Assembly: GCF_000315625.1 (NCBI RefSeq)
Contig: NW_005434632.1
Coordinates: 95,901-159,900 of the forward strand
DNA from: Guillardia theta CCMP2712
Taxonomy: Eukaryota; Protista; Cryptophyta
Direction: 5' to 3'
Length of the DNA stretch: 64,000 nt
The notes under the pieces were generated by a model. The model was given only the letters and a program-made list of their open reading frames with translations, had not been told where the DNA came from and searched no databases. Position numbers and translations under genes: made by a program. Below are positions 5,091 to 56,183 of this stretch, piece by piece (position 1 is the stretch's first letter; every line of letters begins with the position of its first letter).

Positions 5091-5648
5091 ATGTGCAGAG
5101 CATTCGAACTTCCTTCCAGGACCCCTCCTGCATCCTCCTGTGTTGCCCTCCCTCTCCAGTCCCTCGGGACTGACTCGACCAGCATGGTCAAGGACGGAGT
5201 CTGCTCTGCTCTCCCTTCCGAGAACATGAGCAAGGCTTCCTTCAAGGAGGTGATTCAAGAATCCACGGTCAAGAAGCAATGCCCCTTTAGCGCCGAGGGA
5301 TTCGATCTCCTTGAATGGATGCATCAGATGGAAGATGCTCTGACTGAGGTGCATTCAAGTGACGACGAGGTCGAAGAGGAAGAAGTTCTCTCCCAGGCGA
5401 AGGAGTCCTTTCCCGAGCCTGTCGAGCAAGACGACTTCCGCAAGACCGCCAGTGCTCCTCAAAGCCGCGGCTACGAGTTGCTCGAGGTCGACGACTTCCC
5501 CCTCTTCAAGACTCTCAGTGCTCCCATGTCTGTGACCAAGCTTCAATCAACGATTGCCGGCGGAGAGTTTGAGTTTGCGACGTTCAGTCGACCAGATCGC
5601 ACGCGAGCAGAGTACAACAGAGCTGTGGGACACTTTGCAAAGCAGTGA
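5091..5648 (+). CDS. Intronless small acidic protein, 'YNRA' family member 1
   Basis: 185-aa ORF followed by AATAAA. C-terminus LQSTIAGGEFEFATFSRPDRTRAEYNRAVG resembles ORFs 24033 and 55857. Confidence 0.75.
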   Translation: MCRAFELPSRTPPASSCVALPLQSLGTDSTSMVKDGVCSALPSENMSKASFKEVIQESTVKKQCPFSAEGFDLLEWMHQMEDALTEVHSSDDEVEEEEVLSQAKESFPEPVEQDDFRKTASAPQSRGYELLEVDDFPLFKTLSAPMSVTKLQSTIAGGEFEFATFSRPDRTRAEYNRAVGHFAKQ

Positions 5649-5968
5649 CGGCCAATAAACGCATGTTAACACGTATGATGAGAACACGGATTATAAGCTG
5701 TTTAGGAATGTAACAATAAATTTATTCATTTACTACCATCCACAGCGTTCGCCATGATCTTGCAAGAGCTTTATCTTTTCTTCATGTGTTTCATTAAAGC
5801 TTCATACGAATATGCGCAAGATCACTTTGATAATTGATCACCATTTGTGATGAAGCATACATTCGACAACATTTCTTCATTCAGCAAGTATGAAGTTGAA
5901 CATCGTTGACAAATGTCACGACCCCAACAACGTTCTGTGCCTGATCACGTGCGCTGAAGCTTTTGAAA

Positions 5969-7924
5969 TCAAAGAATCTGAAATGAATATCAGCATCTTT
6001 CTTAGATCAAGATGACCTCTCACAGGATCAGATCCGTTCCAGTCGACAACAGCTTGAGGCCACTTGGTCCTTATGCAGTGTTCAAGGGGAGGAGTGAGGT
6101 CAATGCTGGGATCCATCGGCCCCTTGCCGCAGTGAGAGTTTGAATTCTTCCAGGAAACAGAGAGTCGAATAGTCTCGTCTTGCTTGGCTAGCTCATCGTA
6201 GTAGTATAAATCAATCTCCTTGGATCCTTCGGAATTCTGCCAAATCGACAGTAAAGATGCCGTGATTGTATCATACACAATCACCTCGAGAGCATCTAGA
6301 TTGGCGGAGAAGAAAACAGAAAAATGAGACTCAGAGCAAACTACCCATACTGGGTACTTCGGATTTTTCAAGAGGGATCCAACTTCAATGCTTCTGTAAT
6401 GCTCAAAAAGGGAGAAAAAGCCAATCTGAAAACAGACATGAGAAACATCTGGCTTGAACAAAGCCTTTACTTCTTGGTCTCACCTCAGTCGAGCAGGATA
6501 TTCCGTTCAGCGTCAAGCCATCAAGCTCCTTGGTACCATCGAACACGTGGGGAACAGCCTTGCCCACCAGAAGGAGGTTAACCATCTCTTGGCTAAACAA
6601 AAGTTGTCATTCTGTGATTTCTGTGGCCATGTTGCTCAAACCTGCAATAGTTGTGTTGCCCCATAAGCTTCACGTTCGCGTCGAATGACTCCATGTCCTT
6701 GTGAACGTTGCTGGGTCCTCGAGAGAGGATGGCCGAGTAGAGGAAGCATGCAAGGCCTTGAGTGTCGTCCCCGAGCAAAGAAGCCTGCAAAGATATTCAG
6801 TGGCTTTCTTGCAACACATTAGCAGAGATCGACAGTACCTGGTGATCCTGTATCAATCTCCTCATATCAGCCCTGGAACTGACTTCGCAGACCATCAGGC
6901 ACTCTGTCAATCCATCGTCCTTGTAGTTCAAACGCATCTTCTCTTCGTCATCGCCATGAGAGGATCGCCGGCTTCCAGGTATCGCCAGAGTAGCCTTGCT
7001 TCCACCAGCTTGCCAAAGGATATCGCATACGGCATCCATCAGAGCTTCTCGGGCCTCACTCTCTCGAACCATTTCAGGATCAAACCTCCTCTTCTTCAAC
7101 AGCATGTTCTTGATCAGGCAAGCTTGCACACATGCCAGAATACCGCACGGCCCTCCCTCCTTCTGAACAAGCCCGTACTTTAGGTGCGCTGCCGCATTGA
7201 AGAAAAAACCTTGCTTCCATGAACCAGGGAACGAAATCTTTGCATTCCCAAACACTATCGACCTCAGTTCAAACGCTTCCTTAATGGAGATCCTGTTGAA
7301 CTTGAAGCTCTTCTTCTCTTTGGTCAGATCGGACGATTGATTTCGCAGGCTCATCGAAGCAAGATCGTCTCCAACGTCGTCAAGATCCTCCACAACACAC
7401 TCGTTGTGGTCCATCTGACTCTTGCTCACTCCATGCCCCCTCCTTCTGAACACGTTTGCCGCAGAATAATCGTTCCCTACAGAAATGCTAGCAACATTAT
7501 CGTCGTGATGACGATGATCCACGTGGAATTTCTCTATCCTTTCACTGTCAGCGTGCTTGTCGACTGGTTTCGGCTTGTGGTGCCCATCCACCTTGTCTTT
7601 GTCTTCCTTGTCCAAGACTTTTCCTGGTTTCTCAGACTTCTCAACCTCATCTGACTTCTTTTCTTTGAGAGTGACGGCCTTGTTGTGCAAGTACTCCACC
7701 AGAACCTCCAAACACGACGCAAGAGCCTCCTCCCCTCTCTCCTTGTTCCTCTTCACCATCTTCTCGATCCCCAGAGACCTCGAAAGCTCCGATCTCTTGG
7801 TAGTCCTCCCTTCCTTGGGCGGCGCCTCCTTGTTCAGGGCCTCCAGTGCTCCCTTGAGCCCCTTGCTGTTCAGGTACTCTCGCACTAGTGCCTCCCCGAG
7901 CGCTTCTACCTCCTCCCGCCCCAT
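5969..7924 (-). CDS. MINDY-3/4 (FAM188)-type deubiquitinase, MINDY4-like
   Basis: GLVQKEGGPCGILACVQA (catalytic Cys), LKNPKYPVWVVCSESHFSV (catalytic His), DLYYYDELAKQ, PPLEHCIRTKW...VDWNGSDP|IL*. N-terminus LisH-like (LVREYLNSKGL). Confidence 0.88.
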
Positions 7925-8548
7925 TGCAGCCCGGTTGTCGTTGAATGATGTCGTGGCCCGCATCCCCCCCAGGTTCGATTTATCTGAGGCGGGCCGATGA
8001 ATGGATCTGCAGGGTCCTTAGTGAGGAAAATGGGGGGGTAGTAGCCCATCCACCTTTTGGCGGGAAAACTTTCATTGTTTGGCAGGGCAGTGACCAACAT
8101 ACTTTGATATTTCAAATGTAAGACAAATATTTGAAGAAAAATTTCGAAAATTCGAAGGGAGTCTTTGAATTCATGGAGGGGATACCTTTCCAAACGGAGG
8201 GTAGTATTGAGAGACACGGGTATATTTGAGGACAAAATTAGGGGTCTAGGGGTGGATGCTGCTGCTGAGGGACCGGTGCGATAATGCACAAGTTTGGGTT
8301 GTCCCTGAGCCCGAGTTCACCTGGTGGGGGTTGATATACACAGGGTAGGGGTACTTCATTATATTCCTTAAGTAGCAGAGCTTGAATTATATTTAATAAA
8401 CAACTTAAGGAAAAACACTAAAGTCTATTTGATGCACTTGGCAATGAGCCAAAGTGAAATTATGGTGGGTGGGGTATTCAAAGTACCGGTGCAGAGGTCC
8501 ATCAGTATCATCAGGGGTAGGGGGTGGTAGAGCGCGCGGGAGGCAGTC

Positions 8549-10739
8549 ATGAGCCTTGTGTTCGACGAGTATGGCAGGCCCTTCATCATCATCAAGGAGC
8601 AATCTTCCAAGACCAGACTTAAGGGACTTGCTGCTCTCAAGGTAGTCTCTCCTCCCTCCCTCCCTCCCTCCTCCTTGCATGCCTCCTGTCTCTCTCCTGC
8701 TCTCTGCCCCTTGCGCTCCCTCCATTGGAACCCGTCGTGCTGTTTGCATATTCTGCACATCCTTTCACCAGCGTCTCCACCTGCGCCTCTCTGTCATCTA
8801 TATTTCCTCCGCATTGTTTGAAACTTGTCACACTCACCTCGCAACACGACCATTGCTGGTTTGTGAGGGCTGTTTGTTGACAAGAAACAAGAAATTAGAT
8901 GGTGTATGATTCATGGCATGACTACAATTGAATGTTGATCATTCGTTTCAACGGTGTCATGGTTTGTTTGCCTATATACTTTGATGAATGGACCCGCTTC
9001 AGGAAAATTTTACATCATTCTTCTCAATCATGCTGTTGTTTGTCGCTGCATTTCTCCTGTTGCCCAAACATTGGATTGAAGAAAGCAGAAAGCGGTTGTG
9101 ACTGGTTTACTTTCTTGCAGTCCAACATCATTGCTGCTCGATCAGTAGCTAGCACGCTGAGATCCTCCCTGGGACCGAAGGGTAAAAGCACGAGCTGCAA
9201 TCACCGTGTGTAACTAATGAAATGCAGGGATGGACAAAATTCTTGTGAGTGGCGATGGCGACGTCTGTGTTTCCAATGACGGAGCCACGATACTTGAGAG
9301 GATGGAGGTTGAGAATCAAATCGCAAAGCTCATGGTGGAGCTGTCCAAGTCTCAGGATCAGGAGATCGGGGATGGGACCACAGGAGTGGTGGTCCTAGCC
9401 GGAGCGCTGCTGGAGCAGGCAGAGCTTTTGTTAGACAGGGGCCTACACCCTCGCAGAATATCCGAGGGGTTCGAAGTAGCATGCAAGGTAGCATGCGACC
9501 ACCTGGACAAGATCTGCGACAAGATCCACTTCACCCCCCACGAGACCTCCGAGCTCCTTACTGTAGCGAAGACCACCTTGTCCTCCAAGATGTGAGACGC
9601 TCTTGCCCGCGCATGCTCAAAGTTGTAACGCTGATCCCCTGTGCAGTGTGACGAGGGCCTTGGATCAGATGGCGAACCTTGCTGTCAGCGCCATCATGGC
9701 TGTTGCTGACTTCGAGAGGAAAGATGTCAACCTGGACTTGATCAAGATGGAGGGCAAGGTAGGAGGGCAGATGGAAGACTCTATGCTGGTTTCCGGTATC
9801 GTGCTGGATAAGGACATCAGCCATCCTGGAATGGCCAAGACCATCAAGGACGCCAAGATCTGTATCCTGACATGTCCGTTTGAGCCGCCCAAACCTAAGA
9901 CCAAGCACAACATTCAGATCGACACTGTTGAGAAGTATCAGACGCTCTACAAGCAAGAGCAGGAATACTTCGTTGACATGGTGAAGAAGATCAAGGATTC
10001 TGGCGCAACTCTGGCCATCTGCCAATGGGGATTTGATGACGAGGCCAACCATCTCTTGTATCAAAATGAGCTGCCCGCTGTTCGCTGGGTTGGAGGAGTG
10101 GAGATCGAGCTGCTGGCTATCGCTACTGGAGCACGGATCGTTCCGAGATTCTCGGAGTTGACTCCTGAGAAGCTGGGCAAGGCCGGGGTCGTGAGGGAGG
10201 TCTCGTTCGGAACAACCAAGGACAAGATGTTGTTCATTGAGAATTGTGAGAACAGCAAGGCAGTTACCATCTTCGTGCGCGGAGCAAACAAGATGATCAT
10301 CGATGAGATCAAGCGCTCAATTCATGATGCTCTTTGCATGGTGCGCAACCTTGTTCGGGACAACCGGATCGTGTACGGCGGCGGATCTTCTGAGATCGCC
10401 TGCTCTCTCGCCGTGAGCGACGCAGCCAGCAAGGTCACGGGGGTCGACCAGTACGCCATGCGAGCCTTCTCGGATGCGCTGGAAGCGATTCCCATGGCCT
10501 TGTCGGAGAATAGCGGCCTCCCCGGGATCGAGAGCCTCGCGGCGTTGAAGCAGCGGCAGGTGCAAGAGAAGAATCCCTGGTTGGGGGTTGACTGCAAGAT
10601 GGTGGGAACCAACGACATGAAGAGCCAGAAAGTTCTGGAGACTCTCCACGGGAAGAAGCAGCAGTTCATGCTTGCGACGCAGGTTGTGAAGATGATCCTC
10701 AAGATCGACGATGTCATCTCACCCTCTGAGTACGAGTGA
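8549..10739 (+). CDS. CCT5: T-complex protein 1 subunit epsilon (4 exons)
   Basis: [24 protein letters not shown]|[65 protein letters not shown]. Confidence 0.98.
8824..8890 (+). ncRNA. Candidate intronic H/ACA snoRNA 5' hairpin with H box
   Basis: Lower stem CTTGTCA/TGACAAG, internal pocket, upper stem CCTCGCAA/TTGTGAGG, then AAACAA (ANANNA), in the unusually long CCT5 intron 1. Confidence 0.35.
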
Positions 10740-10755
10740 TGCTTATAAATGTACT

Positions 10756-11332
10756 TCACGCTATCCTCCACTTGTTCATCATCTCCTCCATCTCCTCGAT
10801 GCCTTCGGTGCTGGTTGTCACCTTGTACTCGTTTGCTCGTTTTGACAGCTCCCCAAGCTCCTTCCTCTCAGCCCCGTCTTTCCTCGACCCTTGCAGGACA
10901 CTGCATCCTCGTCAACTACAAGGAGGAAGGCAACAGCATCCGAACCTGCAGAATCCAACAACCCTGCCCGTCCTCAATCCCTGCAGGAACGATTCCTTGA
11001 ACCCTTCCTCAAACCCAGCCTGCAGGAATTTCTCTCGGGCCGCTCCGATGGCTTCTTTGTACCCTTCCTGCTCGTACCATCAGGAAAGCCGGCGGACGGA
11101 GGATCGAAGTCATACCTTGTACAACCTCTTCCTCACGCTCTCCTCCTCCCTGACTGACAGCGTCTCTCTCTTGCCGGCGCTGGCTGCCTGGTCCTCCTCC
11201 TCCTCCCAGACGTCGTCATCTACCTTGCTGCAGCAGCAGTCAGCACGGCACTTGCTTTATCCGTCCTCACTTGATGGAGCTCGGAGCAGCTCCGTCCGAC
11301 TCATCGCCGGAAGATGCCCAGACGTCGTCCAT
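10756..11332 (-). CDS. YAE1: Yae1-like protein (Yae1_N domain), spliced
   Basis: MDDVWASSGDE...RKRLYK|EGYKEAIGAAREKFLQAGFEEGFKESFLQGLRTGRVVG matches the repeated GxxxG Yae1 pattern. Ends EMMNKWRIA*. Confidence 0.75.
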
Positions 11333-11564
11333 CTGACAGAGCAGGGGAGGAGAGAAACGTGAGCTGTCAGTCGGAGGAGAAACCTTGAGGGAGACAAAGG
11401 AGAAGGAGAAAAAGGGGGAAGGGGAGGAGGAGGGGGAAGGGGAAGGTAAGAACAAGTAACTCAGCTTAGATCAAAGAACAAAGACAATAATCAACAAACA
11501 TTTCAAGCAAGCTGAAGCAAAAAACAAGATTAAACGTTCACACCATGCCTCCTTGCTCGCTTCC

Positions 11565-11942
11565 CTCCCCCTAGCCCCTCCCTCCCCCTAGCCCCCTCCC
11601 CCTTCCTATCCCCCTTCCCAGCCTCTCCCCCTCCCCCTCCCTCCCTCCCTCCCTCCCCCCCCTTCCCTTCCGTCTTTCCCCCTTCCCCTCCTCCCTCCCC
11701 TTTCCCCCATTAAAGCCACGAGGCCGACCGACCGGGTATTTCTCCTGCCTCGTGTTTTCCCGACCTGGTGGGATCCTGTGGAGGCAGGCAGGAGGACAGG
11801 GGGAGAGAGTAAGGGCGGAGGAGGAGGAGGAGGAGGAGGAGGAGGAGAAGGAGGAGGAGAAGGAGGAGATAAGAAGCGTGGGAGGACGCAGAGGAGGGAG
11901 GGAGGGAGGGAGGGAGGGAGGGAGGGAGGGAGGGAGGGAGGG
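11565..11942. repeat. C-rich and (GGA)n/(GGGA)n simple repeats in a divergent intergenic region
   Basis: Seen directly. Confidence 0.9.
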
Positions 11943-12090
11943 GACACAAAGAGGGTTTTGATAAGAATGAAAGATCCTTGAGATCTGCTAGCGTGATCAG
12001 GCACCCGAGGCAGGAAGGGAGAGAAGAGGGGTGGGTCGATTTTGATCCCCCACCAGCGACACCAAGTCTCCTGCTCCTGACGACCTTGCG

Positions 12091-13767
12091 ATGGTTGAGA
12101 CGAGGAGGAGCAGGTTGAGGACGGATGATGTGGGATCAGGGCATATGACATGGTCGGCGAGGCTCAACGTGGCGAACCTTCACCAGTCGTTCCGATGCTT
12201 CATGGTGTTCTTTGCATGCTACCTGCTAGTCTCGGTCGTCTTGACATCGATGGTGTTCTTCAAGAACTTCGACAACTTGGGCCAGCAGCTCATGTTTGCC
12301 TCGGACCACTGCCCTCGTCTGCTCCCCAGCAAGAGGATTCTTCTATGCTCCATCCTTCGCAACGCTAACCTCGTCCTTCCTGCATGGCGCAAGTCAGTCG
12401 TGGGCCTGGCGGAGTGCGTGAAGAAGAGAGGAGGGGAGCTCCTGGTGAGCGTGTGGAGCGACAAGAACACTGATGACGTCACGTCGCCGGAGCTTCAGAA
12501 GCTCTCGGAGCAGCTCAAGACCATTGGGGTCAAGCATGTCGTAGAGCACAACGGGAAAATGCCCGAGGAGAAGCAGAAGGCCAACAGGATCGTTCGGCTC
12601 TCCTGGGCCCGCAACCAGGCGCTTGAGCAGCTGGGCCTCGAAGTCCTTGACCATGTCGACGCCATTCTCTTCATCAACGACGTGCTGTGGACGGTGAAGG
12701 ACGCGATGAAGTTGCTGCACGAGCAGAGGAAGGAGGGTTACGACGCTCTTTGCGGGTTGGACTACATGTACAACTTCTACGATACCTGGGTGAGTCGGTC
12801 AGACAGCCTGGGCCCGTTCTCAGGTTTCTACCCGTGGGTACACAAGTCGGATGCGAGCCTGACCTCGCTGTCTGCTGCTGTCAACTCCAGGACCTTCCGT
12901 GTCGGCAGCTGCTGGAACGGAATGTTTGTCGCCAACGCCGTTCCCTTCGGTAGCAAGCACAAAGTTCGCTTCAGGACGGGGCAGCAATTCTACAGCGCCG
13001 TCCTGCTCCTGCGCTCTCCCCCCTCGGATCCTTCTGATGTCACCGGGGAGCTCCTGCACTTTCATGCTGGCCGCTCGTCTCCTGTCGACGGGCCGAGGAT
13101 GTACGAGCTCGCAGCGGGAGGGAAGGACGAGGTCGGTGTGCTCTGGGCGGGGAACCTGACGCAGGTGCTGGTCGTGTCCAACGGCAGCCGATACCTCTAC
13201 TCTGAGGCAGACGGGCAGGGGCAGGTCGTGCGCCCTCGAGCTGGGGCTCCAGCTGAGTTCAGCGGTCGCCTCCTCCACCTTCGTCCGATCAGTTACAAGG
13301 AGATCCGATGGCCCGAGTGTGAGCCGAGCAGCGAGTCGCTGCTGTATGCCGTTGACTTCCACAGGCTGGGCTACTCGAAGATGGCCGTCGACCCCAGCGT
13401 CCGCGTCTTCTACTCGTCGATCCACGTGGTTTTCTCCTTCTTCCTCGTGTATCCAGCTGAGGCGATGCTGAGCTTGTACTGGCGCCTGGTTGAGCTCCTC
13501 GGGTTGACACGGCGGGTTGAACGATGGGAGCTCCCATACGACAATAAGACGCTGGGCAGCACAACTTGCATCAGGCCCGAGCCTGACTTTCCTTTCTTTC
13601 TTCTCCCTCTGCTCCCCCTGGTCCTGGTCCTCCTTCTCTTCGCCATCGTGATTACTCGCTGGCACTTTGGCCGCAAGGCGCAGGAGGGAAAACGTACCAA
13701 CTTGGCCTACCGGAGACTAGGGTCAGCCTCTGAGCGGCATGAAAGGGACCTCGAGATGGCGATCTGA
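12091..13767 (+). CDS. CAP59/CMT1-like alpha-1,3-mannosyltransferase (GT69), intronless
   Basis: N-terminal TM; RIVRLSWARNQAL, ILFINDV, CGLDY, FYDTWVSR, VGSCWNG, SESLLYAVD; extra C-terminal TM. Confidence 0.85.
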   Translation: MVETRRSRLRTDDVGSGHMTWSARLNVANLHQSFRCFMVFFACYLLVSVVLTSMVFFKNFDNLGQQLMFASDHCPRLLPSKRILLCSILRNANLVLPAWRKSVVGLAECVKKRGGELLVSVWSDKNTDDVTSPELQKLSEQLKTIGVKHVVEHNGKMPEEKQKANRIVRLSWARNQALEQLGLEVLDHVDAILFINDVLWTVKDAMKLLHEQRKEGYDALCGLDYMYNFYDTWVSRSDSLGPFSGFYPWVHKSDASLTSLSAAVNSRTFRVGSCWNGMFVANAVPFGSKHKVRFRTGQQFYSAVLLLRSPPSDPSDVTGELLHFHAGRSSPVDGPRMYELAAGGKDEVGVLWAGNLTQVLVVSNGSRYLYSEADGQGQVVRPRAGAPAEFSGRLLHLRPISYKEIRWPECEPSSESLLYAVDFHRLGYSKMAVDPSVRVFYSSIHVVFSFFLVYPAEAMLSLYWRLVELLGLTRRVERWELPYDNKTLGSTTCIRPEPDFPFFLLPLLPLVLVLLLFAIVITRWHFGRKAQEGKRTNLAYRRLGSASERHERDLEMAI

Positions 13768-14181
13768 TCAGCCAAGAAACGAGATCCGATCCCTGCCCGT
13801 CTCAGCCGGCTCCTTCTTGCCCTTCCTGTAAGTTACCAGAGTTGCCCTTACACAGTGTCGGTCAAGCTCGGGGGGCTCAGCCGAGTCCAGCTGTTGCCCT
13901 GCTGCTGGCTACATCAGCTGGGGCAGTGTGACCGTACATGGGCTGCTATGAGGCAGGGCCGCTACGAGGCTCAGGCCCACCGCCGGCCATCGGCTGCCGC
14001 TGCTCAACATGGAAGAGCCTGTGACCACTCTGACGGGGCGTTGCCCTCAGGCTGTAGTACGGTACGACAAGTCCGACGACCACCGCAGGAATAGAGCATG
14101 ATCCTAGTGCCGTCATGAGTGAAGTGTCCGGTCACGTCAGACTGAACATCCAGAAAGACGATGTGATAGGAAGGCTGGTTG

Positions 14182-16994: not shown

Positions 16995-17094
16995 NNNNNN
17001 NNNNNNNNNNNNNNNNNNNNNNNNNNNNNNNNNNNNNNNNNNNNNNNNNNNNNNNNNNNNNNNNNNNNNNNNNNNNNNNNNNNNNNNNNNNNNN
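16995..17094. other. Assembly gap (100 N)
   Basis: Run of n characters. Confidence 1.
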
Positions 17095-17171: not shown

Positions 17172-17237
<66 letters not shown>

Positions 17238-22362: not shown

Positions 22363-23008
22363 AACGAACTGGAACTTGAGGCTTCGGAACGCACCCGCTG
22401 ATGAATGATGAGAGTCCAAACTGTGACAAAGGACTGAGTGACAGGCTCTGACGCCGCCCTGAGCAGGCTCCGAGGCAGAAAGTTGGCCACCTCGGCCCGC
22501 GGACGGCCGCGGACTCGGATACTTGAAGTGAAACGGGCCGTAAGGCTTCCGGTGTCGGACCGTCAGATGTTAAGTTACTGTACGGGAAGCACGGTCGGGG
22601 TGGCAACCGTACTACGGTAGGGCCTGGCTGCCGCGCGGCCGGAGTCCGACCGCTGCCGCGCCGCCTGACTCTGTGAGTGGCCGTGCCCGGGCAAGTTCCG
22701 CCGGACTCCCGGAGTCCGGCGGGGACCGTACCTTCAGTTCGGAAGTTCCGATTCCCGCCGGGAGTCCAACGGACTCGCCGGGACTCACTTGCAGTTCACT
22801 GTCACTGGCAAGCAATCATTAAATCATCGCCGACGCCGGGTGTACAGGTACGGTCACTGTACACTACCGTACTAAACCCTACTTCGAGTCCGGCGAGAAA
22901 CTTGAAAGGCTCTCCGCCGGGCGGCCGGGGCCCGGCCCGGGCCGCCGGGCGGCCCGATGGTTTCAAGTAAGTTGACCCGCCGTGCGGTCGGGCCCAGCGA
23001 TCACCGGC

Positions 23009-23021
23009 TTTCTTTACTCAA
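23009..23021 (+). mobile_element. 13-nt micro-insertion TTTCTTTACTCAA with 6-bp flanking direct repeat
   Basis: ACCGGC at 23003-23008 and 23022-23027. Confidence 0.55.
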
Positions 23022-23170
23022 ACCGGCGGGTCGCTCAACCGTCACGTTGTGACCGTCCGACGGCCCGGCCCTTCGGAACCATCCGATCCGGGTGCCGGGC
23101 CGGGCCGGTCCGGTCCGATCAGGGTCAGTATTGGCGGTCACGGCAAAAAAATAAGAGTTGTACAGCCATG

Positions 23171-23200
23171 ACTTTACTCAAAGTTAAGTTAAGTTAAAAC
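23171..23200 (+). mobile_element. 30-nt micro-insertion ACTTTACTCAAA(GTTAA)3AAC with 9-bp flanking direct repeat
   Basis: ACAGCCATG at 23162-23170 and 23201-23209. Confidence 0.7.
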
Positions 23201-24032: not shown

Positions 24033-24545
24033 ATGCTCGCAACCATGCAACGTGTACCTTCGGCGCCCTCCTCCTCCTCCTCCTCCTCCTCCTCCCCCTT
24101 CCTCCTTTCGTCGTCTTCCTGCATTCCGCCTCTCCGTGTGCGCTCCAGCGGTGGTTCCTCGGTTTCTTATCATGTCGAGCAATCTGTCTCACTGCTGGTG
24201 AAAAGTATGAGGCTAGACGCTGGAGACGACAACAAGGGTTGCTCGAGGAAGAGGTGTAACAAGGGGCATGAGTCGTCCTCATATCCGTTTATGTCATGTG
24301 GGCTGGATTCTTTTGCGGACTCTGAAATCATCAGCGGTGGTCTTAAAGAATGCATGAACGAGAAGCGATCGAGGGAAATCTGCGACTTTCCCCGTATCTC
24401 TTTGACTTCCAAGGAAAGCACCAATCGAAGAATTCAATCTTCCTTGGGATCTGATGGAGAATGGGAATATGTGGAGACTACTCCACCGAAAAGATATCGT
24501 AGGTCGGATTACAACCGCGCACTTTCTATGGACATTTTTTCATGA
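24033..24545 (+). CDS. Intronless small protein, 'YNRA' family member 2 (start may be ATG 24207)
   Basis: C-terminus DFP...IQSSLGSDGEWEYVETTPPKRYRRSDYNRALS. Confidence 0.7.
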   Translation: MLATMQRVPSAPSSSSSSSSSPFLLSSSSCIPPLRVRSSGGSSVSYHVEQSVSLLVKSMRLDAGDDNKGCSRKRCNKGHESSSYPFMSCGLDSFADSEIISGGLKECMNEKRSREICDFPRISLTSKESTNRRIQSSLGSDGEWEYVETTPPKRYRRSDYNRALSMDIFS

Positions 24546-43915: not shown

Positions 43916-44666
43916 CAAAGCCGAGCAGCGGTTGATCTGGCTACCCACCCCTCCTTCAGATGCCCTCCCATAGGAGAACCACCAAGGTTATTCTTTTCTG
44001 CACGGAACAAACAATTTTACCACCCTAGATTTAATCCACCCACCCCTCCTGTTCTCCCACCCCCATGCCGGTAAACCCAAATCAACCATGGACCATTATA
44101 TCACACCCCTACCCTCGAAATATCAGTTAAAGTACCTCCTAGTCTCTAACCTCGGACACCACCCCTGCTCTGTTCTATCCTTCCTCGACTTGCAATCCCC
44201 AAGCAGACCCCTACGAAACGAAGATATTCACCCACCCCACCTATGCATGCAATCGTACCTTCATACCCAGCTTTCTTTGCAGTTACCCCATCAATACCAG
44301 CTCAAAGTAGGGGTACTGTATGTGGTAGTCATTCAAGGAGGGGTCATAGGGGAAACGGTAGGGAGGGGTGGTGCTGGGTAAGGTCGATGGGCATGCAGAC
44401 GCTTCTGGGGACGTGTTGAGGACAAACCCGTAGACCCCTTGCTCCTCTCTGGTTTTGTTCCGCTCCTGTTGAACATCTACTCACCTTGTAGCATCTCGTT
44501 GGACCAAATCATCGCTGCCCTCTGTATCGTCTCGTAGGTGAGGGGGTTCACCCCTGCTCCTACTGGCGTCCAGGGACACTCGTGCTCGCTTTTTGCACAT
44601 TTCTGCGGAAAATTAGGTCTTGATTGCATCGGATATCAGCTTTATTACCCACAAAAGTTTCAAATC

Positions 44667-46013: not shown

Positions 46014-46635
46014 GTTGTACAGCTATTCATGTAAAAACAAGGATCTATAATGCTCTCCTACCACTCGTCATCCCAGGATGCCATCTTACACGTCCGTTTC
46101 CTGGCAGGTTCTATCGTACAACTATACATGTTTATGCCGCTTGCCCCTTCCCCTTTCCTTCCTCCTCTTCTCTTCTCGTACCTTGTCCTACCCATTCCGC
46201 CTCCTCCTTTCGCTGAGTCAACGGTTGTCCGAGTCTACCACTGCATCAGCATTTTCGCTGTTCGGTGATATTGCGAAGTTGAGTAAAAAAAACCTTTGGG
46301 AACCTTTGAAATGGCGGGGAAGCAAAGACACCGGAGGAGGGGGGAATACGAGGTGGAGTGGGAGAGCACTGGGAGGAGAGGAAGAGAGGAGGATACAAAT
46401 GACCGGGATGTAATGGTGAAACAGAGCAAGTGTCCTCTTCGTAGGTGTACACTCACTCTCGCTCCTTCTCTCCTCTCCTTCTCTCCCCATTCCTCCCCTT
46501 TGCTGTCACTTGTGAGGTTTGCACATTTTTTGTTGTGAGGCAGACTAGACAGTGCCTTGTCATCAGCTGAATTTCTTCACCCTCATGTTTGGTGTCATCA
46601 GAAGCCATTGCGGAGCTTGACGAGGAATATCGCAG

Positions 46636-49600
46636 ATGGAGTCCAGTGCCCACCTCGAAGTGTTAGCATTGAAGCGACAGGTTGACGACCTTGTCTTTGA
46701 TCGACCCTCCTCTCATCTTGTTGGTTTGCAGGAGATTTCCAACAGGCGAAAGATGTTTGAAGCAACCATCAGGCGCAAGGAAGAAGCGCTCTCTCAGTCA
46801 CGACGATCCTCAGGTGCAGGGCTGGTGCGTGCACGAACAACATCCGGCAATGTTGACTGATGTCGCAGCTTCGCATTGGCAAAAGAGACTCCGAGAGTTC
46901 GAACATTCGCGGGAAGAAGCGAAGAAGAGGAATGAAGATGTGCGACGTTGAGTGAGAGGGAGATTTTGGCGATGATATCGTTCCCTTATTCAGCTCTTGC
47001 TGGCGCTCAAAGACATTCAAAGCAATATGACGCAAACGGGGTAATTTGCGCTGTTATTGGCTTGGAGACGTTGACTGCCACTGTCAGAGCCATCTTCTCC
47101 CAAGAGTTTGCAACTCTGGAGGTAGTGAGAGGCTCATGTCCTCCATCTTTGCTGATCGTGTGTCAGAGTGAGAAAGATCGAGTCAGACGATACGTTGACA
47201 ACAACATGCATCGATGGTTCGCGCAACGGGCACTACCTCGTTGCCGCCTGACGCCTGTGGGCGCATGCAGGGTGGACGAGTACAGGGAGAAGAAGAAGCA
47301 GAAAGAAGAGCAGGCAGCAAAGGCAAAGGAGAAACATGTACACCGTACTGTCTCATGCGTTGTCGATCTGATTCCTATGGATCTGAAGGAGAGGATGAAG
47401 ATGCTGGAGGAGAAGTCAAGACGCTCTCAAGGGCATTCCGATCAAAATCTGCAGGAGCGGAAAGCAGGTTGGAACATGCTGCTCAACTCCGTGGGGTGTT
47501 GACATGTTGTAAGCTCGCGATTCTCAATACCAAGACCCAGAGACTTCAAATGGTGCCCGTTGCTCCTCCAGCCTCACCTGCTCACTCTTCTCTCCACTCA
47601 CTGCCATGACGCTACTCGATGCTGTCATGTTGACTGCGTCATGTTTGGCAGATGTGCATGCATCGGTGCAAGGGCGTGGAGTGAAAGTTGTTGGGGCCAA
47701 TGAGGCCAGGAGGGTGAGTTTGATCCCAGAAGACAAGGACAAGCAAGAGATGGAGGGAGCGACGACTGTGCAAGAGGAGATGCGATCACCAAATCGAGAT
47801 GTTGTTGTCAAGGTTGAGCACCGAACCTCCGAGAAGTTCAACAGGAGCACGGACGACGAGGATCGTTCGCTTTCGGATGGGCATGGCGAGAGAAGGAAGG
47901 AAGGAAGCGACAAGGCCGAGCAGAGAGGGAAAGAAGAAGGATCAAATCAAAACATCGACAAGGACAGAGAAACCAAGAGGGAGGAGGTTAAAGGCTTCAA
48001 GCAAAGTCCAGAAGGGAAGCAAATGAAAGTGACCAGCGGGTCAGACTATAGCCTGCAAGGGCAGGCGATCCACGAGTTGAGCGCAAGAGGAGAAGACAGT
48101 GAAGACGGTGACACGACGAGAGTGAAGAAGGCGGGGGAACGGGGAGGACACGAGGAGAGAGAAGAGGACACGATGGGAAGGATCGAGAAAACCATGGAAG
48201 TTGAGAAGCAGGAGGAAGAAAGGAGGGCTTTAGATCAAAGACGGAGGGAGGAGGAGGAGAGGCAAGCAGCAAGGAGAGAGGAAGGAGGGAGGGATGAGGC
48301 AAGACGAGAAGCCGAGAGAAAGGCTGAAGCACAGCGCCGAGAGGAGGAGAGGAGGCGAGACGAAGAGCGGCGCAGGGACGAACAGGAGGAAGAGAGACGA
48401 GCACAAAAGGGGCGTGAGGAGGAGAAGAGGCGGGAGGAGGAGAAGAGGAGGGAGGAAGAAAAGAGGAGGAGGAAGAGAAGAGGAGGGAGGAAGAGCAGAA
48501 GGAGGCTGAAAGGAGGGAAGAGGAGAGGAGGCTGAAAGAGTCGATGGAGCATGAAGGGAGGCAGAAAGCAGAGGAAACCAAAGTACGGGAAGCAGCAGCA
48601 CGAACGAGCAAAGCGCAAACAGAGCAGACAAGAAAGTCACTGGATCAAGAGCAAGAGGTGATCGGCTACTTTCTTTCTTCTCTCTCCCTTACTCCCCCTC
48701 CTTTGTTCCTGCATACTATCCTTTCCGCTTCCCTGTTCGCTTCTCTTTTTCCACCCCCCCTCCCTCGTCTCCCCCTCTCCATGCCATCTCACTTACGCCT
48801 CCTCACTTTTTCAGGATCACATCATGATGTCCATGGTCTGCTTGCTCAGAGCTTCTGCAGTCCTGCTGACAAACTTGCAGACTGACGAACAAGTTCAGTC
48901 GTACCTGAGCCAAACCCTCCCTGACTTGCGGACACACCTCAAGGTGATCGAGCTTGCGTTCAAAGGAAGAGGAGGAGAGATTGGCGGAGCGAGCGGGCTA
49001 GGGAGGGAGGGAGGGAGGAAAAGAAGGGCATGCAGGACGGGGAGGAGAAAGAAGGTGAGAAGGAAGTTCTGAACTACCTGAAGGTCGTGAAACATCTGGT
49101 TGTGCAATTGGACGCAGCGACTAAGGAGCACGTGGCAAGCCAAGAGCCTTTCCCCTCCAACATCTACAACAACAACTTCTACCAGATCTCGCTTCAGAAA
49201 CTTGTCTGCGAGCATCCCCTGCTGGCCGATTGCTGTGCACTGATGTAGGCTGACAGGCCTTGATCGTGAAAGACATCACCTCCAACACGAATGCTGTCTC
49301 AAAGGTCTGGCAAGAGTGAGATTTACATCTGTCGAGGTGAAAATTTGTACGCCAACCCAGAACGGTCTGGAGAACAGTGCGGCCTCCTTTGCTGAGCTCA
49401 TCAAGAGGTCTCCTCCTCCTCTTGTGCTGTGCTCTGCTCTGCTCTGCTCTAGCTTTTGTCCTTCATTCCTCTCGTTTCTTACCCTTCATCTCCCTTTGTT
49501 CCTTGGTACATCACGATGTTTTTTCTGTCTGCCCTCTCACCTCCTCTCTTCTTCTCCCCTCCTCTCTTCCTGCCTCCTTCTTGTCTCTGCTCCTCCCGCT

Positions 49601-51130
49601 CACTCAAGATCAGGGTGCCCGGAGGAATCATTTCCAGGTCCTTCGTGCAGGTTGATTCCTCCTGTCTCCTCCTGCCTCCTCCTCCTCCTCCTCCTCCTCC
49701 TCCTCCTCCTCCTCCTCCTCCTCCTCCTCCTCCTCCTGCCTCCTCCTCCTCCTCCTCCTCCTCCTCCTCCTCCTCCTCCTCCTCCTCCTCCTGCCTCCTC
49801 CTGCCTCCTCCTCCTCCTCCTCCTCCTCCTCCTCCTCCTCCTGCCTCCTCCTCTCGTTTTCGCCTTCTCCTGCTTCTGCTCCTCATGATCCTCACAAACT
49901 CAGGACTACCTGTGGGACTGCAATCCAGCAGACTACGAGGAGGCAAGGCTCTTTGCGACAATCGAAGAGGTAGAGGAGCTGTCCTGCCGATCCTGCTGCG
50001 CGGGTTGTAGAGAGCAAGAGCCTTACCGCCTACGAGCAGGAGAAGCAGGAGATTTGGCGGCAAGTCAAACGGCACATGAGTAGCATCAAGGATCACGTGG
50101 CTCCTTCCTCATTCGCAGAGGCCATGTCGCATGTAACCCCCGACCTCTGACGCCTCCTGTGATGGTTTGAGGGACCACGTCAGGTGCTCATGGGAGCTCA
50201 GAAACCGACGCCTGCGACCAAGGTCAAGATTGACTCCCTTCCCTCTCGCTCCTTGTGACGTCATAGAGCAGAAGAAGATCGAGGCTTTCCTCCTCCACGT
50301 TGCTGGCTATGCTGTACAACCTGCCGCCTCTGCTGGTACCTCTCGTTTGTCTCCTCAGAGCTGGTCGGCTGAACCTGTCGCAGGGCCAGGTCAGGTAGGG
50401 AGTCAGCCATCGAAGCAAGGTGCTCGCAGCACCTCTCGTTTCCTTTTCTTCTCCTCTTCCTCCTCTTCCTCCTCTTCCTCCTCTTCCTTCTCTTTCTCTT
50501 CTTCCTCCTCCTTCTTCGCCTCTTTCTCTTCCTCCTCCTCCGCCTCACCTTCCTACAGATGAGGACCGACCTCAAACAGCTCCTGTCAAGTCCAGCACGA
50601 GCCAGCTGCACAAGATCGCCAAGTTTGCGGGATCTTTCCTGGGAAAGAAGAGTTCGACCCCCTCTTCTCTGTCGCGCATGTTGGCGACGCCGTCGTTGGA
50701 GCAGTATGACTCGAGGGAGGAGGAGGCTGGAAGGTTTGACCATGTTGGTTGATCCTGCAGGCATGGAAAGGAAGCGTCTGATGAGGAGGAGGAGGTTGTT
50801 GTGAACATCAAGAAGCCTCCGTTTGCTGTTCGTCTCTTCTGATTTCTCAGCCACGTGCTGATTTCTTGACAGTATGCCAAGGCCGTCGCTTCTCATGGCG
50901 GAGGCTCCAGTACGATGCGGCCGTCGACTGCCCCGCAATCTCTCGGTCCCGGACTTGCTGAGAGGGAGCTCAGACTGATCGACTGCTCTTGTCTTAGGCT
51001 CGTTGCTCAAAGGAAGCATGTGGTCTACCAAGACGCCGGTGAAACTTTCTTTCTATCACCTTCTGCTGCTAGAGCTTGTTCGATGTGCTTGTTTATGTTT
51101 GTTGCAGGTGGAGGATGGTCAGCAGGATGA
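46636..51130 (+). CDS. Large hypothetical coiled-coil, E/R-rich protein (many exons); ends approximate
   Basis: Consecutive + strand exons with GT-AG introns and a long charged E/R/K segment (47650-48657). Family not recognised. Confidence 0.55.
49660..49852 (+). repeat. (CCT)n microsatellite, intronic
   Basis: Seen directly. Confidence 0.95.
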
Positions 51131-51199
51131 TTTTGATTTCTGAGTAAAGGTTCTGCCCCTGCTCTGAGACTCCTGCCGTCCCCCTTCTCCTCCTCTTCC

Positions 51200-51776
51200 T
51201 CCTCCTTCCCTCCCCGGCTCAGATAGCAGCCGATCGCTACGATTCTCCGCCTGGTCAGATTTCTTTCCTTTCTCGGGGACCTTGACGAGCTGAAGTGGAA
51301 GCAGGGTACGGCACATTTGATTTCATTTCCTTTGTCTTACATTTTCAACTCTCCTGCTCTTTTTGTCGCCTCTTGCTCCTCCTCTCTTTCCTCGCCCTCT
51401 CGCCCCTCCCTCCAGCTCTCCCTCCCTTAGCGCCCGCTAGCTTGCGGTTCTATTTCTCTTCCTTGCCCGTGTGCGAAGGGCTGGAGAATCTGCAAGGGAT
51501 TAGACGCAGAGTTTGATTGTTGCTCTGTGCTGACCTGCCGACTTGAACCAATCATGTTTCTTCGCTTCCTGCCACCACATTAGGTCAATGGCGCGGGTGA
51601 GGAGATGATTCGATAGTTAGATCATCATCATCATCTTCATTTTCATCTCCGTCGTCGTCGCCGCCATCTTTCTTCACCCCCCTGCCCCTCCCCCCCCATC
51701 CTGCTCCTCCCGCTGCTCCTCCTTCTCCAATCCTCCTCCTCCTCCTCCTCCTCCTCCTCCTCCTCCTCCTCCTCAT

Positions 51777-51807
<31 letters not shown>

Positions 51808-54800
51808 AGCAGGTGGTCGACGAGGATGACTTGCTGACCTTGGCTGAGATCCGTTCTCGAGGGTCGGGTTTGACGAGAGAGGAGATGAGATCCTTGACTA
51901 AGAAGCTGAGGCACTTCCATCTCTACAAGAGAGTAAAACAAGGGCAGGAAGCACAACAAGTGACCTCTCCAGGGAATTCCTCATCATCGCTCTCCCTATC
52001 AGAAGCAGCAGCAGCAGCGGCAAACCCAGTTGGCAGATCTGATTGAAGTATGAGACTATTGTTCGGTTGCTAATGTTTTCTTTACTTCCCAGCGCCTTGA
52101 TGTCCAACCCGCTCAGCATCTGATACAGTGTGAAACCCAACGACCAGGAATCGACCTTGAAGTCATAGGGTTTCGCTGAAGTCTATGTCAGCAGCAGCCA
52201 GCTCCAGCAAGGAGGGAGGACAGGTGAGCAAAAAGAGATACAAGACAGCACAGGGCAGGGCAGGGCAGAGCAGGGCAGGGCAGGGCAGGGCAGGGCAGGG
52301 CAGGGCAGGGCAAGGGGACAAGGCAGGGCAGGGCAGGGCAGGGCAGGGCAGGGCAGGGCAGGGCAAGGGGACAAGGCAGGACAGGGCAGGGGTACAAGGC
52401 AGGGCAGGGCAGGGCAGGGCAGGGCAAGGGGACAAGGCAGGGCAGGGCAGGGGGACAAGGCAGGGCAGGGCCACAGAAAGGACGAAAGAGACAGGCAGGC
52501 AAGCAAGGGACTTGAGCGCTTGACTTCACCTCCCCCTTCAGACACCTCAGGTGCGATGTAGCCAGGAGTTCCAATGTAGCTCGAGCAGCGTCTGCAAGGT
52601 TTCAAGTCACTTGCTGATGCTGATGCTGATGCTGAAATCACCCATCGGGAATCAACTTCGACACGCCGAAATCGCAGAGCTGGGAGGAATGAGGCAGAGC
52701 AAAGCAGGAGAAAGGAACGGCACCTTAGTATCTCCTGAAGGGTCCAGTCTTGTGAGGAGAATGTTCTCTGGCTTCAAGTCACGATGAATGATCTGTTTGC
52801 AAAGAAGATTGAGCCACTTCATATCAGCACAACAAGAAGCCTTCACACATCAAGAAACATGTACACATCAAGAAACGTATACACAACAAGAATCTTATCG
52901 CTTTGACCTGTCTGTCATGGAGATAATCCAGGGCATCGAAGATCTGAGCAAACCACTTTGCAGCCTGCGATCAATCACGACATAGAGTATCAGAGGAAGA
53001 AAGAATGGCGGGAAGCCAAACCAAGACACCAATGTAGAAGAGGAGGGGGAGGAGGCAGGAGGGAGGAGGGAGGAAGGAAGAGGTGGAAAGAGGAGGGAGA
53101 AGGGAAGAGGGAGGCACTGCAGGCTAAGGATGAAGGGAAGCGGAGAAGCAGCAGAGGGCAGCGAGGAGGAGAGAGCAAGTCAAACCAGCGACTCTTCAAT
53201 GCCATCCGAATTCTCAGGATCCTGCAGGACTTGACTCAAGTAGTCAAAGAAATCTCCCGCGAGCTGTGAAGGCGACCTCAGCTCTATCGACAAAGATCCT
53301 CCTGACCTGCTCCATGACGATGCAGAGTGAAGATCGATCAATGCAGACGTCTTCGAGCTTGACGATCTGACCTTCACTTAGCTGCCGTTCCGATCATGCA
53401 GAAGAGAACAAAGAGAACAAGCTTATACATGGGGGTGCTTGACCATCATCATTAGATCCAACTCTTTGTTGCGTTGCTCGTCCGATTGTGTATTTCTCCT
53501 CTGAATGGATTTGAACTTCTTACACACAAAGACTTGCTTATCCGCCTTTCGTACCACACGACGCATCTGCAAAACTGGTCGAATCTGAACGTTCTTGTTT
53601 CTCATCTCACCTCTATGCCAACAGATTTGTTTTCATGAAATTTCTCCAGGATGTTGTATTTCTTCGTCAAACCTTCACTCTAGATCATACAAGCACAATC
53701 TGGCCACCCTACCTGCATACTCCGCGTTGATAGCTGCCTGGTCTTCTGTCGGCCGAGGAACCACACTTGCTGCTGTGATCGGAGTGTTTTCACTGGATTG
53801 ATGGACCTGTTCTAATTTGTATGAAACAAATGTCTTGCACGCCAGTCAAGCAACATCGAAAAACTCTCAGAAGGGTACATCACCTGTTTCTTCTTGTCGA
53901 TGAACAAGAAAGAGTTCGAGTGCTTTCGAGAAAGATCGATGACGTCAAGGTGGCGCAACTCTACCGATCCCTCAACAGTCATATGGTTGGCGTAAGTGCG
54001 ATTGGTAGTTGACAAATGCTCAAGTTTGATCTCATACTCCGTCTCATCCTCCATACTGCCGAACACGTGCTCTGAACCGCTCCTCAGCATGAAAGTGATG
54101 CGGCAATGCTGCTTGCTAACATCCTTGACCGGCACTAGAACATCGCATCCTTCTTGTCTCCCGACCATCACCATCTTCTTGTCAAGAGCAAAGAACTTGT
54201 CGCTGCCCATCCTGATCAAAAATCGCTTCCCGGGATGCGCCTCCATCCCCCCATGCCATGCCCAGTAGTCGAGAAAGAGGCCGTTCTCCAGGGCTCTTGG
54301 AGGTCTGCCCATGGAGATACAGTCGCCCACCTGCACCAGGCCAGCAAGTCACGTGTGCACACAGCAAAGGAGGAGCAAACCTTGACCACAGCCGTTCTTC
54401 CTCGCCCGATCTTGTCCTGGTTGACATACGCGCCGTTGGTGCTCAGGTCGTGCAAGGTCACCGTGAACTGTTGGGAGGAGATTCATGTGGAGGACACAAT
54501 ATCCCGGCTACCATCACCTCCTCCTCCTCTTTGTGCGTGACGAGTCGAGCATGAAGGCTCGACGCAAATTTGTCGTACAGGACAACCTGGCATTATTTGT
54601 CACTCAGGGTTGGAAGTGCAGAGCAGAGGTCGTACTTGGCATCGGTCGTGTCTACCAAACAGGATGCACTTGCTGGCAAGACAGGTCAGAGATGGATACA
54701 GCATGCACCTGGCATGTTGCTACCTCTCGGTCAAGGCAAGGTCGCAACCTTTCTGTGTGTTGAGGGACCTTAGGATCAACATTCCCTGTCGAGCAGTTAT

Positions 54801-54821
54801 ACCCGCACAAGGATCAAACAT
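51200..54821 (-). CDS. Ser/Thr kinase (CAMK group, Chk2/Rad53-like) with two N-terminal FHA domains; 3' end approximate
   Basis: FHA1 FGRHDRC..SSLHA..DLSTNGAYV; FHA2 VGRQEGCD..SKQHC..STTNRTY; kinase FVCKKF, KHPH, HRDLKPENIL, CDFGVSK, GTPGYIAPE, VDSWSLG. Confidence 0.85.
52250..52470 (+). repeat. (CAGGG)n microsatellite in a kinase intron
   Basis: Seen directly. Confidence 0.95.
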
Positions 54822-55009
54822 GTATCCTTCTCCTCATCCTCCTCGTCCTCCTAACACTCCTTATCCTGCCTCCTCCTGCCTCCTTACTTCTGATTCCGCC
54901 TCTTCCTCCTCCTCTCCTCTACCACCTTCCGTCTTCTCCCTCCTCCCTCTCTTCTTCGAGCTGGGCAAGACTTTGGGAATTTTGTCGGGCAGCAGAACAA
55001 ATTCAGTTC

Positions 55010-55200
55010 CGAGTCTGTCGGATCACTAGACTCCCGCGGCCCCGGCCCGGCCCGCCGGCCGCCGGGGGCCGGCCGGGCCCGGGGGCCTACTACGTGGCAC
55101 TGCGGCACTGTGCCTCCTAGTCGTACTGAGTCACACGGACCGTGACCGACCTTTTCGCGCTGTAAACATCTTGTGACTCAACCTGACTCCTTCGCAGTCA
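55010..55200. promoter_or_regulatory. Short GC-rich island between divergent genes
   Basis: CCCGGCCCGGCCCGCCGGCC, TGAGTCA, CGTGACCG; between the kinase (-) and ORF 55857 (+). Confidence 0.55.
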
Positions 55201-55856
55201 AATGGAACAGTGGCTCTTAGGCTGGAGGCCGGCTTCGATGTCCGTTCGAAATCCAGTCAGTTTTCCAAATGCTATGTTGAATTTCAAAATTGCAGGCTGG
55301 ATTTTTAGACCGCGGCGTGTGTAGATCGGGAAATCACGAGCCTTCAGTCCCCCGTGACTGTTGTAGAGGTCTCGATCGACCGGTACAGAGTACGTGACAG
55401 TGATGGTCTTGAGGTGGGTCATGGGAACAATGTGCTGTTGTATGACCCCTACCTTCCTCGTGAGATTTCAGGGTGTGGTGGGGGGTCGTAAACCGTACGT
55501 CCGACATCGAGGTCACATGGCATGTTACGTGTCAGGGAAACAGAAAATTCCAGAGAATCGAAAACATTTCTTTTCGATTAATTTTTCTTGGAGTGAATTG
55601 CCCAACGAGTGTATTTTGAAGACGAGGTACATAATGTACCGGTATAATGGAGATTCTTTCAGGGGTGGGGGTAGTCCAGGGTTGCAGCCCCGATCCAACG
55701 CCCGAGATGCCTTTTTAGAACATGGGGAGAAATGGCAGGTAAGTCAATTTCGGGTGGGTCATTTCAGGGGTGAATGACGGGGTGGGGGTGCCAGGGGTAA
55801 CTGCGTGGAGTGATTTATCTTCACTCGGAGGAGGTACGAGGGGAATAGACGCGACA

Positions 55857-56183
55857 ATGGCCACGACGATAGGTCATGCACGTCCGGACCAGATAGAGGG
55901 GAAGCAGATCGTCGGCAACAAGCGGACGATCTCAGTGGACAGGCTCCAGACCCTCATTGACTCGGTCTACCTGGAACCAGAAGCTCCCTTCGAAGACCGG
56001 TTGTTGTCTTCCATGAACGAGGTTCAGGTTTCTTCAGATTCGCAGGGCCGATCTGCTGGGAGCTACAGGATCAAATACCAGTCCAGCATCAAGAAGAACG
56101 AGAAATTCACCGGAGTAAAGTTCTCATTGTTTCAGAAACGCCGTGCGTACAATCGTGCCCTTGGCCTGACTGCAAGCCAGTGA
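55857..56183 (+). CDS. Intronless small protein, 'YNRA' family member 3
   Basis: MATTIGHARP...YQSSIKKNEKFTGVKFSLFQKRRAYNRALG, followed by AATAAA. Confidence 0.7.
   Translation: MATTIGHARPDQIEGKQIVGNKRTISVDRLQTLIDSVYLEPEAPFEDRLLSSMNEVQVSSDSQGRSAGSYRIKYQSSIKKNEKFTGVKFSLFQKRRAYNRALGLTASQ

Follow-up and report, generated by a model that had tools for sequence, protein, structure and literature searches.

A family of small proteins with a conserved C-terminal module in the cryptophyte Guillardia theta

Three open reading frames (ORFs) in a 64,000-nucleotide stretch of the genome of the cryptophyte alga Guillardia theta CCMP2712 (RefSeq assembly GCF_000315625.1, contig NW_005434632.1, positions 95,901 to 159,900 of the forward strand; hereafter, the window) end in the same short C-terminal module and represent an undescribed protein family and mini-fold, of ordinary evolutionary kind. 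Our favoured reading, held tentatively and at slightly below an even chance, is that the three ORFs are genuine members of an undescribed cryptophyte family, that their shared tail serves as a module for docking or assembly, and that the family grows by local duplication and is kept uniform by conversion. While setting out the evidence for this reading, this report also weighs the alternatives, namely a short linear motif for autophagy, an autonomous mini-domain, a set of silent gene copies and a family dispersed by retroposition.

The shared tail and the family it defines

All three ORFs are present on the plus strand with intact frames, and they and their parts lie as follows.

5091..5648, plus strand: ORF1, an open frame of 185 amino acids (aa) plus stop
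5484..5501, plus strand: ORF1 'EVDDFP' motif, which corresponds to 'SL.DSFN' in other members
5538..5645, plus strand: ORF1 conserved tail module, a predicted beta-hairpin and C-terminal helix (predicted local distance difference test, pLDDT, 83-91)
24033..24545, plus strand: ORF2, 170 aa as first read
24033..24206, plus strand: Ser-rich, CT-rich in-frame leader of ORF2, placed by the start of the Hanusia phi orthologue
24207..24545, plus strand: probable ORF2 coding sequence (CDS), 112 aa plus stop, 71% identical to H. phi P0010
24375..24392, plus strand: ORF2 'EICDFP' motif, from the pairwise BLASTP alignment with ORF1
24426..24542, plus strand: ORF2 conserved tail module; the tail of the H. 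phi orthologue is predicted by AlphaFold2 (AF2) as hairpin plus helix, in blocks of pLDDT 80-88
55857..56183, plus strand: ORF3, 108 aa from its ATG plus stop, identical to annotated model P0008
56067..56180, plus strand: ORF3 conserved tail module, from the tail alignment

The initial annotation of this DNA had described alignable tails in the three ORFs, and this was confirmed by alignment, by BLASTP and by independent profile matches. Over the roughly 40 terminal residues, Q-S, R and Y-N-R-A are invariant, the stop codon follows seven residues after YNRA in each ORF, and the DFP of ORF1 and ORF2 stands exactly 14 residues ahead of QS, while BLASTP of the three ORF pairs gives E = 2e-6, 0.002 and 0.046. 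A six-frame translation of the window contains the pattern QS[ST]-x15-30-YNRA-x5-9-stop three times, and none of 200 first-order Markov simulations contains it; since this strict pattern was picked post hoc, the simulation result is not leaned on. Instead, the tail family is held to be real because profiles of the tails retrieve members that were not used to build them, both at ORF ends in other parts of the genome and in other cryptophytes. The likeness of ORF1, ORF2 and ORF3 sits at the protein level only and reflects no DNA repeat: synonymous sites are saturated among the three tails (proportion of differing synonymous sites, pS, 0.85-1.0), and comparison of the upstream regions and islands detected no DNA similarity beyond short CT-rich matches. 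Chance similarity and an origin of the tail as a DNA repeat are ruled out by the saturated synonymous sites, the unlike flanks and the Markov simulations.

Across the family, the consensus tail runs to about 38 residues and reads [KR][KR]LLQSS-phi-x2-[DE]G-x-[WFY]-[TE]-x-[VI], then 8-10 residues, then RR-x-YN-x-[SA]-[IVM]-[SG], five residues and the stop. YN stands at a constant distance from the stop in G. theta and H. phi members, and the window copies lie at the more divergent end of the spectrum of tails. A subset of members also has in common the acidic-aromatic 'SL.DSFN' motif, to which the DDFP or DFP of ORF1 and ORF2 corresponds.

The N-termini, earlier described as unrelated, acidic and Ser-rich, need some redrawing. 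The annotated model of ORF1 (P0012) starts at Met32 (5184), precisely where an N-terminal motif common to C81 paralogues begins, and from that methionine ORF1 has the start M-x-K-D-G-x-C-x-x-L-P in common with four C81 copies, so that 'unrelated' does not wholly hold. Nor is 'Ser-rich' confirmed as stated, as the Ser-rich first 58 codons of ORF2 sit upstream of the start of its H. phi orthologue. The start of that orthologue corresponds to about codon 54 of the G. theta frame and so falls five codons short of Met59 (24207); the Ser-rich, CT-rich codons ahead of Met59 are for this reason probably a 5' leader or untranslated region rather than protein. In ORF3, the open frame extends upstream to a GTG at 55770. 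ORF1 has a CT-rich in-frame leader of its own (5091-5183), of which codons 1-28 show 27/28 protein identity to an H. phi transcript, set against 53% over the whole alignment, and the H. phi orthologue is without the Met32 start; judged from these sequences, the segment may represent either a 5' leader element that is strongly conserved or an extension of the N-terminus.

A profile built from the three tails and rebuilt three times was searched against the G. theta CCMP2712 assembly (87,145,349 bases in 669 contigs). ORF-terminal matches rose from 3 to about 20 and then reached a plateau, and members outside the current profile matched at E = 1e-7 to 5e-4, which is a real significance test. The tails thus do find further members, about 20 in this genome and more in other cryptophytes; the family once termed 'large' is, by a converged search, of modest size. 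Protein sizes range from about 70 to 155 aa, and 17-18 of the roughly 20 members lie in four local clusters.

C42 (the window contig): 5 members, the three in the window plus copies at 168.9 kb (minus strand) and 172.7 kb (plus strand), 9-13 kb past the window end
C79: 3 members, in tandem
C92: 4 members in two inverted pairs; one copy (C92:70.0k) is without a start codon and has a degraded tail
C81: 6 members, five of them within 8 kb, in both orientations
C2: 1 member
C14: 1 member, divergent, with a C-terminal extension

ORF1 and ORF3 are annotated gene models (P0012 and P0008), and one G. theta member is GUITHDRAFT_153059. Every annotated G. theta member that was looked up bears the name 'hypothetical protein', no paper found in a literature search on seven GUITHDRAFT identifiers of family members mentions them, and eight unannotated paralogues were absent on exact look-up in the protein collection.

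Beyond G. theta, one G. theta-based profile was run exhaustively over 1.84 billion representative proteins and returned 43 matches at E <= 1e-3. Of these, 23 are small proteins (57-255 aa) that have the module at the C-terminus or close to it (E = 4e-17 to 9e-4); their named sources are G. theta, Hanusia phi, Rhodomonas sp. CCMP768, R. abbreviata and R. salina, and two come from short environmental contigs. The remaining long, multi-stretch matches were dismissed as false positives: the two that were read, P0022 and P0023, have the appearance of short DNA repeats in translation, with 'FQSSLEENPEWN' in them, and P0035 is a tetratricopeptide repeat (TPR) protein in which the profile matched only the NVRALYNRAISY helix segment. 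A word-index protein search with the family alignment recovered four members, all already known. The proposal of a lineage-specific family is upheld in that the small proteins matched outside G. theta fall only in cryptophytes and the two environmental contigs, and the family appears so far to be confined to these cryptophyte genera, as far as one G. theta-based profile can see.

Selection, inheritance and local growth

The family proteins are fast-evolving, and their tail is under purifying selection. Over the 44 codons of the tail, the ratio of nonsynonymous to synonymous substitution rates (dN/dS) is 0.14-0.6 in most paralogue pairs, with a maximum of 0.75 among the 11 pairs that have a computable ratio, and third codon positions are the most variable. 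Between G. theta and H. phi, two orthologue pairs (L060 and L061, neither of them a window ORF) show dN of 0.18-0.24 in the tail versus 0.38-0.47 over the remainder of the CDS, and dS is saturated (1-2); the ATG8 exon, by comparison, shows 100% identity between the two species. ORF1 and ORF2 each have an orthologue in the H. phi transcriptome, P0024 (53% identity over 192 aa) and P0010 (71% identity over 119 aa) respectively, both colinear with the G. theta frames. Among MMETSP transcripts, two C92 copies have identical counterparts and another transcript clusters at 90% identity with a C81 copy.

The colinearity of these transcript-derived orthologues with the genomic ORFs bears out the view that the coding regions are uninterrupted. 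The emphasis once placed on intronless genes in an intron-dense genome is nonetheless reduced, as 21% of G. theta gene models have no introns (PMC6260743). The intronless state of the family is inherited from a short ancestor.

Growth has been by local tandem and inverted DNA duplication. The inverted arms of C92 comprise 413 nt at 98% identity and 222 nt at 95%, and C79 contains three direct copies of 241 nt. In several paralogue pairs, DNA identity of 95-98% covers only the final 129-241 nt of the CDS, ending at the stop codon; in C81 331.6k/330.0k and C79 35.4k/30.3k the tail-coding DNA is alike, whereas neither the coding DNA upstream of it nor the 3' flank is. The simplest reading of these sequence patterns is that tails within a cluster are kept uniform by gene conversion limited to the segment that is similar enough. 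Tandem and inverted duplication would thus add copies, and conversion would hold the tail-coding segment uniform inside clusters.

Two side observations concern the same clusters. In C79, C81 and C92 (L008/L016, L023/L026), paralogue identity begins inside the CDS and ends exactly at the stop codon; and at G000:C81, about 330.3-330.7k, some 11 tandem copies of an eight-residue unit, EAKKRRSE, lie in frame directly upstream of the methionine of one member (L026).

The initial annotation had raised the possibility of a different mode of growth, which in its full form would have a large intronless family dispersed by retroposition, each copy landing behind a GC island. Uninterrupted coding sequences and the islands upstream of the three window copies are what such a history would leave, and they are listed here with the skewed tract before ORF1.

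3051..4200, unstranded: CpG-rich GC island upstream of ORF1, GC 0.67, CpG observed/expected (o/e) 1.16
22401..23200, unstranded: CpG-rich GC island upstream of ORF2, GC 0.62, CpG o/e 1.14
54851..55200, unstranded: GC island upstream of ORF3, GC 0.61, CpG o/e 0.86
4801..5090, plus strand: G-rich tract immediately before ORF1, with a GC skew of +0.42 to +0.66

An island and a G/C-skewed tract do precede each window ORF, the islands by 650-900 bp, and the skew of the intervening spacers reaches +0.66 and -0.42, that is, with opposite signs. As a family trait, however, the arrangement dissolves. About 11 of the 20 members have an island of GC >= 0.62 within 1.2 kb upstream, leaving about half without one, and several have one downstream; islands are common in any case, with about seven CpG-rich ones in the 64 kb of the window and those of GC >= 0.62 occurring about once per 8 kb. 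In our view the islands are ordinary promoter regions, in many cases bidirectional, and not a trait of the family. The clustering of 17-18 members among tandem or inverted DNA repeats further argues against retroposition, as do the small number of copies, the frequency of intronless genes in G. theta at large (21%; PMC6260743) and the lack of common sequence among the upstream regions. Hallmarks of retrogenes were likewise wanting: the 450 bases read downstream of ORF1 show no poly(A) tract, and no intron-bearing parent gene of the family turned up. Nor do the ORFs look transposon-borne: a transposon would be expected to leave shared DNA, such as terminal repeats or a common island, around the copies, and the three upstream regions and islands have only short CT-rich matches in common. 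Dispersal by retroposition is therefore highly improbable.

Predicted fold and possible function

The initial annotation had inferred regulators with a docking motif, an idea that stays conjectural; for the tail, the prediction is a folded mini-domain, a beta-hairpin packed on a C-terminal helix, rather than a linear motif. For a 65-residue C-terminal piece of the H. phi orthologue of ORF2 (25-row alignment), AF2 returned two strands and a terminal helix with pLDDT of 80-88 in ten-residue blocks, and for full-length ORF1 (P0012, 24 rows) it placed a hairpin at 116-122 and 129-135 and a helix at 139-153 with pLDDT of 83-91. The P0012 model contains one more confident helix (42-58) and is of low confidence elsewhere, and the N-terminal remainder is on these models mostly low-confidence and probably disordered. 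These predictions agree with the initial picture of a conserved terminal module attached to a disordered remainder.

That picture had also included the statement that no described domain was recognizable, and this too is sustained. A Pfam-A hmmscan of 24 members gave no match below E = 0.01 and no family matched by two members; the best hit of a PDB sequence-profile search had E = 1.4, that of Foldseek against PDB E = 0.56, and that of a wide VIA fold search Z = 2.7; a fold search of the ESM Atlas gave template modelling (TM) scores of at most 0.46, and a feature search with P0010 gave no usable match. No signal peptide or hydrophobic segment is evident in the member sequences.

Several candidates were considered and set aside. 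A C2H2-type zinc finger is ruled out by the lack of conserved Cys or His columns in the family alignment, and a TPR repeat, suggested by the resemblance of the 'ALYNRA' helix to TPR helix A, by the presence of a single helix after the hairpin and of no TPR match in Pfam. Resemblances to motifs of protein phosphatase 1 (PP1) inhibitor-2 ('HYNE'), ENSA/ARPP19 ('FDSGDYN') and the plant KRP and p27 inhibitors of cyclin-dependent kinases (CDKs) were dropped on motif order or spacing, as were those to the D-box, PIP box, SPOP and B56 motifs, and none of these families appeared in the Pfam scans.

For function, we are guided by the contrast within each protein. A variable, fast-evolving, acidic and largely disordered N-terminal part would be tied by the conserved hairpin-helix tail to one conserved partner, much as in an adaptor. 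A more specific form of this proposal, which we regard as possible and somewhat more doubtful than the general one, is that the tail is a metal-free, self-folding domain of about 38 residues in cryptophyte-specific adaptors, whose disordered N-termini would be offered to one partner while conversion keeps the docking surface uniform. The analogy is with SOCS-box-type adaptors, in which a variable part is likewise joined to a short C-terminal module of about 40 residues across paralogues. The SOCS box, which binds Elongin B/C, is helical, and the cryptophyte tail resembles it in neither sequence nor fold.

A different use of the same fold would be as an autonomous mini-domain for self-association, through edge-to-edge hairpins, or for nucleic-acid binding, as a metal-free beta-beta-alpha unit resembling a zinc finger. 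The predicted topology suits this idea, as do the basic start of the helix (RR-x-YN) and the basic residues before strand 1, and the classical C2H2 finger has the same hairpin-then-helix order and a similar size. However, the module lacks a conserved Cys/His ligand set, its net charge as counted from the sequences is only about +1 to +2, and it has no structural neighbour in PDB or the ESM Atlas. Unlike a classical C2H2 finger, the tail has neither the Cys2His2 ligands nor a Pfam zinc-finger or structural match, and it occurs as a single copy at the extreme C-terminus. We consider self-association or nucleic-acid binding unlikely.

Judged by sequence, the only concrete known motif that the tail seems to resemble is the Atg8-binding LC3-interacting region, or Atg8-interacting motif (LIR/AIM), which would make the proteins autophagy receptors or regulators docked on ATG8. 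In most members, as in LIR/AIM receptors, an acidic run and an aromatic-x-x-aliphatic core on a beta-strand occur in a small, otherwise disordered protein. Most members have [DE]-G-x-[WFY]-x-x-[VIL] after an acidic stretch (GEWEYV in ORF2, and also GSWTLV and GDFEFV), roughly two thirds, including ORF2 and ORF3, have an LIR core [WFY]-x-x-[LIV] after acidic or S/T residues, and G. theta possesses an ATG8 gene. In about one-third of members, however, the aromatic or the +3 position is non-canonical, examples being FEFA in ORF1, E at the aromatic position in the C79 copies and T at +3 in several C81 copies. The family unit, unlike an LIR, spans about 38 residues with invariant Q-S-S and Y-N, and a linear motif leaves these residues, the R-x-x-Y-N context and the fixed distance to the C-terminus unexplained; AF2 moreover puts the aromatic strand within an intramolecular hairpin. 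A complex prediction of ATG8 P0056 (a complete cryptophyte protein 95% identical to the G. theta exon) with the last 45 residues of ORF2 scored 0.22 (mark 0.34) and counts neither way. An LIR function is accordingly held to be improbable.

The ATG8 sequences gave rise to a separate observation. The G. theta ATG8 gene (L053, G000:C68:79124-79534) has short introns that keep the frame; P0052, an MMETSP 'complete' ATG8 protein, is an unspliced read-through, and the H. phi entry P0053 keeps the last intron. Such in-frame introns call for caution with transcriptome-derived proteomes of these algae.

Returning to the favoured reading of genuine family members with a docking tail, several points weigh against it. 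Four RNA runs, three assembled and one of raw reads (about 6% of it read), were mapped on 2500-7500, the region of ORF1. None of the three assembled runs yielded a contig over ORF1, and the raw-read run gave about 2-3 plus-strand reads near its 3' end while the neighbouring gene was deeply covered. ORF2 was absent from the protein collection, whichever of two starts was used for the look-up. The alignments behind the AF2 models are shallow (24-25 rows) and the predicted TM (pTM) is low, at 0.27-0.37; a module of 38 residues might be folded only when bound, or might instead serve as a linear motif. Lastly, the docking function, its partner and its subcellular site are a best guess argued from architecture.

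Some of these points feed an alternative in which the window copies, ORF1 above all, are silent or decaying or do not represent genes, function being confined to other paralogues. ORF1 is weakly expressed at best in the sampled RNA runs, ORF2 is missing from the protein collection, and one family copy, C92:70.0k, has no start codon and a degraded tail. Against this, all three frames are intact and their tails end at the conserved position, ORF1 and ORF3 have annotated gene models, and the H. phi orthologues of ORF1 and ORF2 are intact and transcribed (53% and 71% identity) despite saturated synonymous sites in the two pairs measured. The earlier expectation that the ORFs are transcribed is thus borne out for the H. 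phi orthologues of ORF1 and ORF2 but not for ORF1 itself, which is almost silent in the four runs. Taken with the intact orthologues, silent window copies are unlikely.

Surroundings of the three ORFs and wider significance

The convergent neighbour of ORF1 on the minus strand (5733-7500) is highly expressed and contains five or six introns of 46-58 nt (CT..AC on the plus strand); some 85 nt separate its 3' end from the stop of ORF1. At 5916, 3 of 11 reads of run X16 differ by T>C. On the other side, an expressed minus-strand gene (2500-3275) has 51-nt introns and transcript contigs that reach about 3181-3275, inside the 3051-4200 island. Abutting as it does the 5' end of an expressed gene on the minus strand, the island has the appearance of a divergent promoter region. 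Close to the starts of window genes, short CT-rich stretches of low complexity are found repeatedly (24033-24120 and 54857-54950), and weak BLASTN matches link 24075-24120, 49660-49877 and the island at 54851-55200; these tracts probably reflect a common promoter or leader composition. One further feature lies between ORF1 and ORF2, outside all three ORFs.

16995..17094, unstranded: assembly gap of 100 N

Because this gap separates ORF1 from ORF2, the spacing between the two is an estimate only.

In cryptophytes, one of the major lineages of algae, about half of all gene models are without an assigned function. Lineage-restricted families of small proteins that grow by tandem duplication are common, and no long-standing question is yet touched by this one. 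What is gained is the definition of a single, coherent orphan family: its sequence signature is clear, its mini-fold is predicted with confidence, and its pattern of evolution is unusual in joining a conserved, converted tail to replaceable N-termini. Annotators thereby gain a family that can be named, and the tail, as a short peptide that can be synthesized, may serve as bait for a lineage-specific partner.

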